Part shown: positions 19,670-30,820 of the stretch, piece after piece | Position numbering within the stretch: the stretch's first letter is position 1 | Layout: every line of letters begins with the position of its first letter | From: Oopsacas minuta | Taxonomy: Eukaryota; Animalia; Porifera | Assembly (NCBI GenBank): GCA_024704765.1 | Contig: JAKMXF010000277.1 | Span: 124,001 to 188,000 of the forward strand | DNA length: 64,000 nt | Direction of reading: 5' to 3' | Notes under the pieces: model-generated | Told to the model about the DNA's origin: nothing | Databases searched by the model: none | The model's input: the letters and a program-made list of their open reading frames with translations, nothing else | Made by a program: the position numbers and the translations under genes

Positions 19670-22600
19670 ATGGAATTCAATTCACTACTCTCTCCTACAA
19701 TCTATCCACAAAACAAACCATTCTCATGCTCCAGTATTGATCAGAAACCTAGTATGGAGTTCTTAAGTCAAATGATGTCACCCAATGATAGCTATACATA
19801 TCCGAGAAAGCCCAGTTCTTGTGCTGGTGGAATGAATCTCTCATTCGGGTTGCCTGAACGATACGATTTGGTAGATGCATTCGATAGGAAACCAAGGTGA
19901 GTAAATGTTTCTTTCTATTTGCAAACTTTCATGTTCTAAACCAGCGGTTTCCCAACATTTTTACAAGTCAATACAAATTTTGAGATCCTGTGAACCTCCT
20001 GTTACCAGTTGTGGTCTGCTTTTGAAATCCTTTTCAAAAATTTGACGCATTTTGATATTTTGAATATGATCATTTAATGAAGAAACACTTAATAATAGAA
20101 GTACAAGACAATATATTTCTAATTAATGATAGAAAATCAAATTGTGACCTTGTATTAAGGTTCAATTACACATTTGTGTCCACATCCTGATGGACAAAAT
20201 TGTTCCGTTTTAAACCAATCGATTATATGCTCACGATGTCCACCGTGTTGACAAAGCTTACACCACGTGCAAAGCCCGTACACTGGTAGACGGCAAATAG
20301 AACAGAGTTGTTTCGGCCAAGCATTGCACTCTTGACAAGGCTTCGCACTTGTTACCGGTTTTTCACAACTTTTACATTCATGACTGCCCATACATGATGA
20401 ATTATCCCAGTCATAAAGTGTGCATAAATTTTCTTTATCTTCAAGGTCACGAATTTCTTGATAGAATTGAAATGTGTGTAGAAACTTGTAAATTTTGCAA
20501 GCGAACAAATCCAAATTGAACGATTGTAGAATATCAATATAGGAAGATACCCAGTGAATGAAAACAAATGGATCAATTTGTTTTCCAAGTTTATCATATA
20601 GACATAAGTATATGTAAACTGCATGTTGAATTTCGCCGTTTTCAACTAAATATTCGGTTATAGAAGCCAATGCTGGTGTAAAATTAAGTGGCGGATGCTT
20701 TGGAAATATTTGAGAATCTGTCTTTGATTTTCGCATATTTTCAGGAATACCTAGTATTAGAAACAATCGAATTTTACTCAATATTTTTGTATTATTATTA
20801 ACCTACCACTTTCGCCAGAAATTAAATGTTTTGGCGTAGTAGTTGATTGAAAAGTCGTATCTTTAGATGGAGATAATTTGTTGTTCGAGATAGTCATGTC
20901 TGTTTGGGCCCACCATGCCAAATCGCGGTTTTTGATCAACGAAAACACATCTGTGACTCTACCAGGCGGTGAACAAGATTCGAATCGTTCTTCTAACTCA
21001 CAACTTGCTAATAAATTACTTGTGTGAATGAACTTTTCGTGTAAATCTGTTTGCTCATGCAAATCAGTGCTATCAAAAAATGAGAATGAAGTTGAATGAG
21101 GAGTTGCTGGTATCGATTTTGAAACTATATGTTTAGATTCTAGACCGATATCCCAAGGGTTTCGAATCGATTTATCCAATGATTTTCCAAGGCCTATCAA
21201 AATTAAATTTACATTAGGTAACGGAGAAATAGTTGCTATTATAAAGCAAAAGTGTAAGACATTAAAAGATTTTCTTGCGGTTCTATAGCGAAATGAAAGT
21301 GAGCAACTGCCCGACTTTCGTGCAGCAGTAAAGGGCAATAAATTTCATCGACGCGAAATTTCCAGATGGTTATTTTTTGGGTGTAGATGTGGACAGATTT
21401 GGTAAATTTAACATATGGTAAAGCTTCATGCAAAAACGGCGCACTTAATATGTTAAAATCTTTTTTGCATGTTAAAATTACCTTTGAGACCTCCTGGCGA
21501 TGAAATGTTTTCTTTACTCCCAAGGTTGATAACACCCTGAGATATTTTCTTCGCGTCTACGAGAAGGCACTGACATAAATACCACACAAATCCTATATCT
21601 TCCCTACCAAGCCGATTTGAAAGTTCCTCATTATGCTTACATAGTTCCATGAGTGAATCGTTTGAAAACTTATATTTTTGCGCGAATTGTACGAATTCAA
21701 TTGAGCGTGCATAAATGGATCTAATAGGATCGGAAATCTTTTGGATTTTGCATTGCACATTTGAATTTGACAAGTTGTTATCAGACGCTGATGAAGATAG
21801 AGGATCTAGGGCCCCTAATGGTGATCGGAGTTTATTTATATATGATACATCACGTGGTATATTAACGGAATGGCACCGATCTCGTGGTGAATTTTCCCTT
21901 ATTGTCGTTGGATCATATTCAGAAAAAGAACTCCATTGTGGGCGATCAATATTCTCTTGCAAATCTTCCAAACTAGCATTCATAATTCCTAATGTTCTCG
22001 AACTAAACGTATGCTGTACTACACCTACATTATTGCAAGCTAGAGATACACCATTGATCGACTCGTTCATTCCAACTGCATTATGTTCAGAATGCATCAT
22101 GACAAGCCCACTACTAGAACATGAGATTAAATCACAATTCTCACTCTTTAAGCAAAAGAAATCGACTAAAAACTGTTTTTGTTCTATTGATCGCTTAAAA
22201 GGAACTGAATATGGTTTTGTAATATCCCAGAAATTTATAAAACTATCTCCTACGCAAGAAATAGATGCCAGTGTTCTTCCATTTGTTGATTGTTGTGTCC
22301 AGGCCACCTAGATGATAGAATAATCAGGTTAGCAAACAAGATATAACCTTGGCATATAGAGTATCATATTAAAAACAATCATAACATTTCAAATTGGCGC
22401 CTTAAAACAAGAATGTATAGATAGCACTTAAACTCCTATAATATTGAATATATAAAATCACCAAAATGTACTATACCTCTATTGATACCAAATATATCGA
22501 TAATAGACAGCTAAAATTAGAAAGTATACGATAAAGCAATTATATTAGAATATCTAAATCGGTTAAGTGTAATAATGGTAGTAATGGTTCTGGCAATCGA

Positions 22601-28600: not shown

Positions 28601-30820
28601 CCAGATATTAACTTACTATCATTCAATCCTCCAACGAATTTGACACTAAATATATTATCCAGATGACCTGTGTTTAATTTCTGTATTTCTTTGCCTAAAA
28701 CATTCGAAATAAAGAAATATGTAATTTTTTATAAATTTGAAATTTAGATAATAAATATCATTCATATAAAAAATTCATCATATTTGACTATTTCGTGTTA
28801 CTTATGGACAAATTACCTTGAAAAGGGTCCCATAACTTTATTGTAAGATCATCTGAACCAGAGGCTAAAATTGTCCCAGATTTATTCCATTCGAGACAAT
28901 TCACACAACCTGTATGTCCAGTCAATAACTTCATATCTTGTAGTTTATCAATTTGTGAGGAATGACCTTCTAAATCTCTCATTAACCGTATTGGATTATC
29001 AAAATTCTCATGCATTTGTTTTCGAAGCGACGTGAACACATTCTGTTTATGTGTTGGTAACCTATCCATGTTTTCAAAGAGCTATGAAACTTTCAAATTG
29101 AACTATGATTAAACTATTTGAAAACACTACAGATACAGCGCATATAATATTAATTAAGCCACATAATTAGGAAACTATCCTTATACAATGGATCTGGTAT
29201 TTTAAGAGTTTGTATATATTTTTAGACTGGTTATGGCAACTGTTGCCATCTATACTTTGGACCTGGAGCACCCTTAGACCTGCCCAACAGAAACCAAGCC
29301 CAACTGACTGGATTATACCCCTTGCATAAAAGTTACATCAGCATGCCAGGTAGGGAATATCTAAAATATATTCTAATACAGTGTAACCTCCACTAACGGG
29401 GAATCAGGGTTCGATCTTTCGGCGTCCCCTACCACCCCATTTGTAGAAATTATACTGTAGATATTTTGAAATTATGCAAAGAAAATATTTTGAAAAAAAT
29501 TATTTTGTCTTTATTAAATCGCTCTTTTATAGTGCCTCAACACTCAGAATTTCTAGCACAACAACAGCAAGCAGCTAATGCTTTCCACTGCGGCTCACTT
29601 TCACCAAACTTTTCCGCTGGCCAACCAATGCCAGCCCTTGATTCTTCAAATCTCTGTTTCAGCAATATATACTACCCAAGCATTGTAAATCCATTCAATA
29701 TACCGAGACCTAATAGGAGAAAGCCAAGGAAGACGAGAGAGAAATCCAGCAAACCGACTCCTATAAGTCCTTCGGAAAAACCATACGTCTGCCCTTATGA
29801 TGGTAAGTAGTAGGTTGCCGGTTTAAACTATAAATGGGCAAAATCATAGGCGCAGCTTGCCTCATCAGTCTGAGTGGGCAAATATGAAGTCATGTCCACC
29901 CCAAATGGCCCCAGTTACGCCTATAGGCAAAACTACGAATTCCATTCCAAAGAATTCACCCATGAGCTGGTTGAGAAAGGATTTTTTGAAAGATTTGCTT
30001 GAAAATGTCCAACTTTAGAATATTCGACAGCAAAAATGGCCACATGAAGATCAACAAAGGTTCATAGAAATTCCGTATTTTTACACAAATCAGGGGCCAA
30101 ATTCTTAGTACACAATACCGTGACATAGTTTATTAAATGTATTCATAGGTTGTGAGAAGCGATTCTCTCGTTCAGATGAGCTAAACAGACACACACGCAT
30201 CCATACCGGCTATAAACCATTCGTATGTACAATCTGTATGCGAAGTTTCTCAAGATCTGATCACCTTACAACACACATTAGAACTCACACTGGAGAAAAA
30301 CCATTCGCTTGTACTGTGTGTTCGAGAAAATTCGCACGTTCAGATGAAAGGAGAAGGCATTCAAAGGTAATTAGTAAATATCCGCATTTAATAGGATAAA
30401 TTACATACTGAAAAATATTGAAATTTCCAGAAATGTGGGAAAACTATCCAAAATTTTAATATTTTCGATATTTTCTAGAAATCTCGATATTCCTGATAAT
30501 TTTTCATTTCCGGTATATCGGTACCGGAAATGAAACAAGGTTTGGTGTCAATTGTTAAATAGTTTCCCTATTTTTGTCGATATTAAATATAAATTTTTAC
30601 ATAGGTTCATGAGAAAGAAGCTTTACGTAAAGCAGAACAAGAATCACAAGAACAACAAAACGACTCCCAAAACAACAACACAAGACTCAAATCATCTTGT
30701 AAACTTGAAGATGTGAATACCAACACAAACAACAACAATTCAGTTTACCCTGATATTTTAAGACATCTAACCCCAACACGTCCGATGGAAATCCTAGAAT
30801 CTGCCTGCTATATAAAATAA
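19670..30820 (+). CDS. EGR1: EGR/Krox-family C2H2 zinc-finger transcription factor, 6 exons, ~450 aa
   Basis: Exons 19670-19896, 25437-25734, 29226-29349, 29533-29802, 30149-30366, 30605-30820; phases 2/0/1/1/0 all match; 1353 nt. Three fingers [26 protein letters not shown] / [21 protein letters not shown] / [17 protein letters not shown] are diagnostic of EGR. Assignment of exons 1-3 rests on strong GTGAGT/GTAGGG donors, tttatag/ttttag acceptors and frame continuity. The symbol denotes the family, not strict orthology. Confidence 0.88.
20155..24689 (-). CDS. WDR24: GATOR2 complex subunit WDR24 (Sea2), 5 exons, ~861 aa, nested in EGR intron 1
   Basis: Exons 24689-24286, 24196-23866, 22307-21482, 21235-20807, 20750-20155 (2586 nt). 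N-terminal WD40s ([46 protein letters not shown]); [10 protein letters not shown] motif; [14 protein letters not shown]; C-terminal zinc region [31 protein letters not shown]...CPSGCGHKC. Confidence 0.9.
23474..23733. mobile_element. Tc1-like non-autonomous element in WDR24 intron 2
   Basis: TA flanks; 24-bp TIRs CACTCCCTGGCCAAAAGTACTTGA vs CAGTCCCTCGCCAAAAATACTTGA (3 mismatches). Confidence 0.8.
26602..29069 (-). CDS. WDTC1: WD and tetratricopeptide repeat protein 1 (DCAF9/Adipose), 5 exons, ~657 aa, nested in EGR intron 2
   Basis: Exons 29069-28817, 28694-28585, 28517-28040, 27806-27420, 27347-26602 (1974 nt). Motifs [61 protein letters not shown]; [25 protein letters not shown]; C-terminal [11 protein letters not shown]...[12 protein letters not shown]. 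Confidence 0.9.
29379..29457. mobile_element. ~80-90 bp TA-flanked MITE, family C (copy 1)
   Basis: TA|CAGTGTAACCTCCACTAACGG ... TTTGTAGAAATTATACTG|TA; homologous to copies at 34720, 43078, 46414 and 54697. Confidence 0.75.

Follow-up and report, generated by a model that had tools for sequence, protein, structure and literature searches.

An EGR-family zinc-finger gene hosting antisense WDR24-like and WDTC1-like genes in consecutive introns in the glass sponge Oopsacas minuta

Opposite-strand genes within the introns of a host are a classical arrangement, as in human NF1, which hosts OMG, EVI2A and EVI2B, and in many nested genes of Drosophila. To our knowledge, such bilaterian arrangements are long-stable and mostly without demonstrated functional coupling. 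In nematodes, internal spliced-leader (SL) trans-splicing competes with cis-splicing at acceptors that follow long introns. The genes concerned here are familiar from other animals: vertebrate EGRs are compact two-exon genes, WDR24 is a GATOR2 subunit, and WDTC1 is a CRL4 receptor.

The present locus lies within a window, by which we mean the whole 64,000-nucleotide stretch of O. minuta DNA that was analysed. We are confident, if not certain, that it is a conserved nested-gene locus of this compact genome, in which an EGR gene hosting two guests has a cis-spliced long form. It resembles NF1 and the Drosophila cases, where the guests have promoters of their own, in that antisense guests reside inside host introns. 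The guests of NF1 share one intron, whereas the EGR guests occupy two successive introns of a small transcription-factor gene in a trans-splicing organism. SL trans-splicing in hexactinellids has already been published. Nested genes are likewise a published hallmark of glass sponges, being abundant, about 12% in one species, and in many cases conserved (PMC10282587). The genes described in that work on Aphrocallistes vastus share with ours a complete intronic gene, a compact hexactinellid genome and SL trans-splicing; the EGR host differs in carrying two guests, each of several exons, in successive introns that flank one of its own coding exons. Our locus is thus a well-documented instance of a kind of nesting already very common in glass sponges, and reveals no new mechanism. 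Only 83 nested genes are annotated in O. minuta, as against 2432 in a curated relative (PMC10282587), and it is therefore likely that the EGR gene has been missed by automatic annotation. Our literature search found no paper on EGR in Oopsacas and none that mentions this locus.

The EGR host gene and its long transcript

The fingers encoded by exons 4 and 5 identify the family. They are three tandem C2H2 fingers with the recognition helices RSDELNR, RSDHLTT and RSDERRR, and they match the RSDEL.., RSDHLTT and RSDER.. helices of the three fingers of vertebrate EGR1/Zif268. EGR1/Zif268 aligned over all 72 residues (8e-38), ahead of WT1 (8e-34) and KLF4 (about 1e-21), and the entries scoring above it were poly-finger proteins matched in several stretches. 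Unlike the vertebrate genes, the sponge gene is divided into seven coding exons, with introns within and just after the finger region. Searches were run on single exons. No Pfam family, and hence no EGR N-terminal or NAB-binding region, was found when exon 1, the exon-4 ORF and a 67-residue ORF spanning the final two-thirds of exon 2 were scanned. Among 1.84 billion representatives searched, the exon 2 peptide had three relatives, all of them exon-sized ORFs on glass-sponge contigs, and it matched no full-length transcript-derived protein. The corrected model of the glass-sponge EGR gene specifies a protein of about 474 aa with a lineage-specific N-terminal region.

Table 1. Features of the EGR locus (positions in the window)
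Feature	Position	Strand	Description	Evidence
EGR-family gene	19252..30820	+	seven coding exons over 11.6 kb	
EGR exon 0	19252..19284	+	predicted 33-nt coding mini-exon; 11 codons from ATG, then GTGAG donor	cross-species conservation
EGR exon 1	19631..19896	+	acceptor TTTTTAG, donor AAG/GTGAGT	13-nt 3' end joined to exon 2 in X4 contig
EGR intron after exon 1	19897..25436	+	5540 nt; whole WDR24-like gene inside	13-nt overhang
EGR exon 2	25437..25734	+	298 nt, between two guests; canonical acceptor, GTGAGT donor	RNA joint 25734^29226; exon-1 overhang
EGR intron after exon 2	25735..29225	+	3491 nt; whole WDTC1-like gene inside	X4 GT..AG joint
EGR exon 3	29226..29349	+	acceptor serves cis-splicing and spliced leader	joints 25734^29226, 29349^29533
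EGR exon 4	29533..29802	+	basic region and start of zinc finger 1	RNA joints, translation
EGR exon 5	30149..30366	+	three C2H2 fingers, EGR-type recognition helices	RNA joints, Pfam zf-C2H2
EGR exon 6	30605..30820	+	C-terminal tail, stop codon	RNA joint 30366^30605, translation; conserved in relatives
WDR24-like	CDS 20155..24689	-	exons 24689-24286, 24196-23866, 22307-21482, 21193 (or 21235)-20807, 20750-20155	homology only
WDTC1-like (DCAF9/adipose)	26602..29081	-	ATG 29069; exons 29081-28817, 28694-28585, 28517-28040, 27806-27420, 27347-26602	introns supported by X4; 3' end predicted

Transcript evidence comes from assembled contigs of a single run of one study (X4), which is not recorded as RNA and shares its sample with the DNA runs X1-X3. 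Splicing is evident in its contigs, whereas X1-X3 give no joints. Four GT..AG joints belong to the host: 25734^29226, which skips 3491 nt and with them the whole of WDTC1, followed by 29349^29533, 29802^30149 and 30366^30605. The junction across WDR24 is represented by a contig that enters exon 2 bearing 11 unaligned letters plus AG, identical to the 13 nt with which exon 1 ends. This string is unique in the window (19884-19896), and the exon order that it implies is conserved in four other genomes. All three junctions that the initial annotation had proposed as a check (19896^25437, 25734^29226 and 29349^29533) were recovered, the first by way of this overhang. The long EGR mRNA is produced by ordinary cis-splicing across both guests, and no single molecule among the assembled X4 contigs covers all EGR exons.

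The two critical junction contigs have short sides of fewer than 31 letters (28+2 at 25734^29226 and 11+2 at 19896^25437), and it could be argued that they are assembly chimeras, the upstream exons belonging to a separate small gene. We regard this explanation as largely refuted and scarcely tenable. The joints coincide to the nucleotide with canonical GT..AG sites that had been predicted independently, the window contains the 13-nt overhang nowhere but at the predicted end of exon 1, and DNA runs from the same sample lack the joints. Moreover, phases and splice sites are kept in four other genomes, and exons 1, 2 and 3 have no closing stop.

Three upstream exons had been proposed initially, at 19670-19896, 25437-25734 and 29226-29349. 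RNA and conservation bear out every one of these boundaries except the start of exon 1, which is at 19631 and not at 19670; nor does the ORF start at 19670, as had been assumed, since it begins in the conserved mini-exon 0. The proposed in-phase joining of these exons to the zinc-finger exons stands: AG/GT sites are canonical throughout, and phases 2, 0, 1, 1, 0 join without a stop in phase arithmetic and per-exon translation. The 39 nt 5' of the internal ATG at 19670 are open and in frame with exon 0, and their peptide is conserved. The TTTTTAG acceptor of exon 1 is conserved in 5 taxa, and one relative, L012, carries an in-frame 3-nt deletion. Exon 0 is kept in L010, L012, L013 and L014, where the alignment reveals a GT donor and synonymous third-position changes.

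Alignment upstream of exon 1 exposed the conserved acceptor and so led to exon 0; no conserved promoter was seen there in the alignment with relatives. Rfam and ARAGORN gave no matches over 18500-31500.

The two guest genes

Each guest lies on the strand opposite to the host and had been annotated initially as a complete five-exon gene within its intron, a description that our models uphold. For the WDR24-like gene the model has five coding exons and about 847-861 aa, built from frame-preserving GT-AG sites and homology to ORFs of L010. Its exons are colinear with human WDR24 (exon 1 with residues 39-143, 3e-9; exon 2 with 148-237, 1e-19; exon 5 with 628-788, 1e-18). The last exon is nearer to WDR24 (1.3e-18) than to WDR59 (2e-10) or MIOS (6e-5), and with N-terminal WD40 homology and a C-terminal RING-like domain (Pfam zf-RING_16) the gene has the composition of WDR24. 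In the PDB, the large middle exon of this gene had no match. A probable trans-splice acceptor lies 2 nt before the ATG.

The WDTC1-like gene encodes 657 aa, the same length as the GenBank O. minuta protein LOD99_3592, and all five of its exons lie within the host intron. X4 shows three of its introns as CT..AC joints, and the position of the fourth is given by paired loose ends. Named homologues across animals were all WDTC1 (E 1e-38 to 1e-49, about 100% of the query), and the nearest PDB relative was only DCAF8. Pfam called no TPR in the O. minuta WDTC1 pieces at E<0.01; the TPR part of the assignment to WDTC1/DCAF9 is based on alignment to WDTC1 proteins. An unbroken X4 contig spans 25705-26659, and the WDTC1 3' UTR could therefore overlap EGR exon 2, so that this guest may not be strictly intronic at the transcript level.

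At the 5' end of the gene, the WDTC1 RNA contig stops at 29081 and is immediately preceded by an AG on the minus strand. EGR exon 3 lies 157 nt from the WDTC1 ATG, as had been noted, and about 144 nt from the WDTC1 5' end; this spacer is conserved in DNA in the closest relative, L014. The contig end and the 157-nt distance fit a trans-spliced WDTC1 whose outron or promoter would overlap EGR exon 3. We infer that the guests are independent genes, both probably SL-trans-spliced.

Conservation of the nesting and its possible causes

The nesting, for which a comparison of synteny had been suggested, is kept in four other glass-sponge assemblies and partly in a fifth. In L010, L012, L013 and L014, which are mutually distinct, every proposed EGR exon is interleaved with opposite-strand WDR24 and WDTC1 (the comparison was first made with six proposed EGR exons, exon 0 being added later from the same four assemblies). 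In the fifth, L011, a partial contig places EGR exon 2 between the two guests, and the position initially claimed for that exon thus recurs in all five. Splice sites and phases of the EGR exons are kept in the four assemblies. EGR exons match other glass sponges at tblastn E from 1e-13 to 1e-46 (6e-18 to 2e-31 for exon 1; 1e-24 to 3e-41 for exon 2 in L010-L014), identity is 64-77% in exon 4 and reaches 94-100% at the amino acid level in exon 5, and DNA conservation at the locus is almost wholly confined to exons. For exons 1-3, dN/dS is 0.08-0.21, or roughly 0.1, with dS about 1 or more. Given this conservation and these ratios, the upstream exons are not chance ORFs. The nested layout, common to six mutually divergent glass-sponge genomes in which synonymous sites are near saturation, appears to be old.

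What keeps the doubly nested locus intact across six divergent hexactinellid genomes? In our explanation, the EGR transcription unit runs through two complete minus-strand genes in consecutive introns, and the most probable reason for the persistence of the layout is that no rearrangement could release a guest without disrupting the host. Persistence would need no selection for regulatory coupling. Host-guest functional cross-talk is possible, and functional coupling of EGR with its guests is at present speculation. It could be hypothesized that the nesting was selected as a regulatory module: the output of WDR24 and WDTC1 would be tuned by host transcription running through them, or by collision of convergent polymerases, and a factor that responds to stimuli would thereby be coupled to the control of nutrients and growth, a coupling that had been proposed initially. 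The retention of the layout in six genomes, the antisense orientation of both guests and the short, conserved spacer between WDTC1 and EGR exon 3 are in its favor. We nevertheless consider it quite improbable, since conservation of the layout is expected without coupling when un-nesting breaks the host, and since nested genes run into the thousands in glass sponges and are in many cases conserved. In addition, one RNA sample yields spliced contigs for all three genes (the WDR24 exons being a homology model only), and the WDTC1 loci of Nematostella and Trichoplax have neither EGR nor WDR24 within 10 kb. We hold it to be very improbable that selection maintains the conserved nesting and that the antisense guests are modulated, through transcriptional interference, by EGR transcription on induction or by whether EGR transcripts are cis-spliced in the long form or begin with the leader; if true, stimulus response and growth control would be hard-wired to each other in glass sponges.

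A spliced leader at the exon 3 acceptor

A second X4 contig reaches the exon 3 acceptor with a loose end, AAAAAACTTAC(+AG), at 29224, an overhang of just 13 nt in one contig. This sequence is the invariant 3' end of an SL RNA gene family of nine copies, in each of which it is followed by GTAAGTTGG. The contig thus has, at an AG acceptor, a non-genomic leader that corresponds to the exon of a multicopy SL RNA gene, bounded by a 5' splice site, as is proper to an SL trans-spliced mRNA. The predicted SL RNA fold was no better than shuffles (z = -0.25). Acceptor 29226 also takes the spliced leader, and a 5'-truncated EGR mRNA is made besides the long one. EGR transcripts beginning at or after about 29100 and lacking joints to 25734 or 19896 had been named in advance as evidence against the upstream exons; an SL form from exon 3 does exist, but so does the long form with its upstream joint.

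Whether the truncated form might be the main product deserves consideration. Most mRNAs would then receive the leader at 29226, through an internal promoter or through trans-splicing that outcompetes the long cis intron; the long nested form would be minor and the protein N-terminally truncated. Beyond the overhang itself, the word depth of junction contigs points in this direction, being ~1250 at the exon 2^3 joint and about 2200-2350 at downstream joints, as does summed word depth, several-fold lower in exon 2-3 bins than in exon 5-6 bins. These values should be interpreted with caution, since depth is a poor measure and isoforms cannot be ranked from contig depth. Purifying selection acts clearly on exons 0-3 in the frame of the long form, with conserved phases, and hence the long EGR protein matters; moreover, L010 does not conserve the in-frame Met at the exon 3 end. 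An exon 3 start for the main product is accordingly unlikely, though it has some claim to attention, and the cis-spliced long form is a genuine product of the gene.

The use of a single acceptor both in cis and by a leader recalls internal SL trans-splicing in nematodes, from which the EGR case differs in that its trace is a 13-nt overhang, observed in just one contig. The locus offers a convenient test case for the interplay of trans-splicing with long host introns.

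Exon structure and identity of the host gene

The region has a G+C content of ~33% and short introns. The initial annotation had proposed that three plus-strand exons (exon 1, then taken to start at the ATG at 19670, and exons 2 and 3) join in phase to the zinc-finger exons of an EGR gene. The joining holds: the acceptors are good, the donors read GTGAGT, GTGAGT and GTAGGG, respectively, and exon-by-exon translation with phase arithmetic gives a single open frame from 19670 through exon 6 (phases 2, 0, 1, 1, 0). The start at 19670 does not hold. Alignment of the upstream regions places an invariant TTTTTAG acceptor 39 nt farther 5' (36 nt in the orthologous locus L012), conserved in five taxa, and the intervening extension is open, with its peptide kept in five of five. 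About 350 nt farther 5' lies a conserved 33-nt element with an ATG at its start, in frame with exon 1; most of its differences among taxa fall on third codon positions, and its final triplet, AAG or CAG, precedes GTGAG or GTAAG. Judged from conservation only, this element is exon 0, and the most likely structure of the EGR gene comprises seven coding exons (~474 aa) with a start at 19252. A TAATTTT(T)GG motif ~20 nt 5' of that ATG recurs in O. minuta and in the loci L010, L013 and L014, and could mark the transcription start of EGR or be part of its core promoter.

The three C2H2 fingers encoded by exon 5 have the helices RSDELNR, RSDHLTT and RSDERRR; EGR1/Zif268 matches all 72 finger residues (8e-38), and WT1 and KLF rank behind. 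Pfam assigns no domain to exon 1, to the exon-4 ORF or to the ORF that takes up the final two-thirds of exon 2. A search of 1.84 billion representatives with the exon 2 peptide yields just three relatives, each an exon-sized ORF from a glass-sponge contig. The N-terminal region is thus lineage-restricted. Two stretches, one of them in the intron between exons 3 and 4, resemble a tRNA 3' half (GGTTCGATC ... CCCCTACCA); ARAGORN and Rfam call nothing there, and an 18-21-nt match to another genomic contig in the DNA runs suggests a small dispersed repeat.

Coordinates of features at the locus and of the spliced leader RNA gene copies
Feature	Position	Strand
EGR exon 0	19252-19284	+
EGR exon 1	19631-19896	+
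EGR exon 2	25437-25734	+
EGR exon 3	29226-29349	+
EGR exon 4	29533-29802	+
EGR exon 5	30149-30366	+
EGR exon 6	30605-30820	+
WDR24 coding region	20155-24689	-
WDTC1-like gene	26602-29081	-
TAATTTT(T)GG motif	19225-19251
WDR24 second intron	22308-23865	-
Conserved non-exonic element	26077-26117
tRNA-like stretches	29395-29447, 28613-28630
Conserved gene order 3' of EGR	31621-33738 and beyond
SL RNA copies, assembly G000	C10:47280, C10:77418, C10:92154(-)
SL RNA copies, assembly G000	C16:67145, C19:67062(-), C41:92623
SL RNA copies, assembly G000	C133:200365, C348:25636, C348:29468(-)

Splicing across the guest genes and at the exon 3 acceptor

Run X4, a single run used as assembled contigs, is not recorded as RNA and comes from the same sample as the DNA runs X1-X3. 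It behaves as RNA-seq, since among these runs only its contigs carry canonical splice joints, and they do so for genes of both strands. Two observations support both nesting junctions. First, the joint 25734^29226 skips 3491 nt, the entire WDTC1 gene. Secondly, a contig entering exon 2 begins with 11 unaligned letters that, with an ambiguous AG, equal the final 13 nt of exon 1, a 13-mer occurring once in the window (19884-19896). The short side is below 31 letters in both contigs, and 19896^25437 rests on a short overhang. Further host joints are 29349^29533, 29802^30149 and 30366^30605, so that the junctions named in the initial annotation were recovered, 25734^29226 and 29349^29533 as joints and 19896^25437 through the 13-nt overhang. 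Unspliced X4 contigs run continuously over 24705-25464 (WDR24 5' end to EGR exon 2) and 25705-26659 (EGR exon 2 to the last WDTC1 exon). These contigs do not reveal their strand and may represent host pre-mRNA, an outron of a guest or the 3' UTR of one; from the second, the WDTC1 3' UTR may overlap EGR exon 2.

In another X4 contig, exon 3 is preceded by the overhang AAAAAACTTAC (+AG), a string that forms the unvarying 3' end of a conserved element present in nine genomic copies (L001-L009). In each, a ~45-nt leader exon ending in AAAAAACTTACAG is followed by GTAAGTTGG, a small GGTG..CACC hairpin and an Sm-like site, AATTATTG; conserved boxes lie ~60-100 nt upstream, and the bases just 5' of the invariant 13-mer vary. 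The copies form a family of spliced leader (SL) RNA genes; SL trans-splicing is already known in hexactinellids. The exon 3 acceptor serves both cis-splicing and the SL, and a 5'-truncated EGR mRNA consequently coexists with the long form. Junction-contig depth in X4, flagged as unreliable by the tool, is ~1250 at exon 2^3 vs ~2200-2350 downstream, a hint that both forms are substantial.

The guest genes

A complete five-exon antisense gene had been proposed for each of two EGR introns, and both proposals are borne out, each coding region lying fully within its host intron. Three WDTC1 introns appear as CT..AC joints in X4 and the fourth is set by paired loose ends, giving five exons and 657 aa, the length of the near-identical GenBank entry "hypothetical protein LOD99_3592 [Oopsacas minuta]"; across animals, every named homologue is WDTC1. 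The joint 25734^29226 spans this gene. The WDR24 model (five exons, ~850 aa) was built on GT-AG sites that preserve the frame and on homology to ORFs of a relative, and its nesting derives from the exon 1 overhang on exon 2. A probable SL acceptor of WDR24 lies at ~24691. Exons 1, 2 and 5 are colinear with residues 39-143, 148-237 and 628-788 of human WDR24, and the C-terminal RING is nearer WDR24 than WDR59 or MIOS. The second WDR24 intron (1558 nt) is long for this genome, with no conservation with relatives and no Rfam hit.

The WDTC1 RNA contig stops at 29081, right after a minus-strand AG, which makes trans-splicing probable for WDTC1 as well. The outron or promoter of WDTC1 would then overlap EGR exon 3, as had been guessed. 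Between EGR exon 2 and the stop codon of WDTC1, a stretch of 42 nt outside the exons shows 90% identity in L014 only; this element could belong to the WDTC1 3' UTR or be intronic.

Conservation, novelty and coupling

Orthologous loci (L010-L014, L011 partial) were found in five glass-sponge assemblies at ENA, among them ERZ25072740, ERZ25069837, ERZ20067936, ERZ25072730 and ERZ25071281. The four full loci keep the order E1, WDR24, E2, WDTC1, E3-E6, with all EGR exons opposite in strand to the guests; EGR splice sites and phases are maintained. Nucleotide differences within exons, among the loci and against O. minuta, amount to 12-36%, and the loci hence represent different taxa; DNA conservation is nearly limited to exons of the three genes. 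EGR exons 1-3 show dN/dS of 0.08-0.21 with synonymous sites near saturation. The upstream exons are therefore protein-coding in the frame first proposed, and the nesting is older than the split of the sampled lineages. In Nematostella and Trichoplax, neither EGR nor WDR24 lies within 10 kb of WDTC1; as far as so thin a sample can tell, the linkage seems specific to sponges or to hexactinellids.

The O. minuta annotation lists only 83 nested genes; for some genomes, low counts have been ascribed to an option switched off in gene-modelling programs (PMC10282587). We found no paper describing the EGR/WDR24/WDTC1 locus, which is a new, well-supported case of an already known phenomenon. Unusual here are the transcription-factor host, the two multi-exon guests in consecutive introns with a coding exon between them, and a single acceptor used in two ways.

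The structural observation is confirmed, and its interpretation is supported in part. The data show one EGR transcription unit that extends over WDR24 and WDTC1 and is spliced in cis across the two, with expression of all three genes in a single sample. In the arrangement we propose, the guests would be autonomous genes, and the layout would persist since the host would be damaged by any un-nesting. The initial annotation had suggested that EGR transcription could be coupled to both growth regulators through interference. Conservation of the layout alone is no argument for this idea, since a nested arrangement is by nature difficult to reverse and such arrangements are very common in the clade. 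Gene order 3' of EGR is also kept in L010 and L012-L014, with a ~500-550-aa ORF on the EGR strand followed by oxysterol-binding-protein exons.
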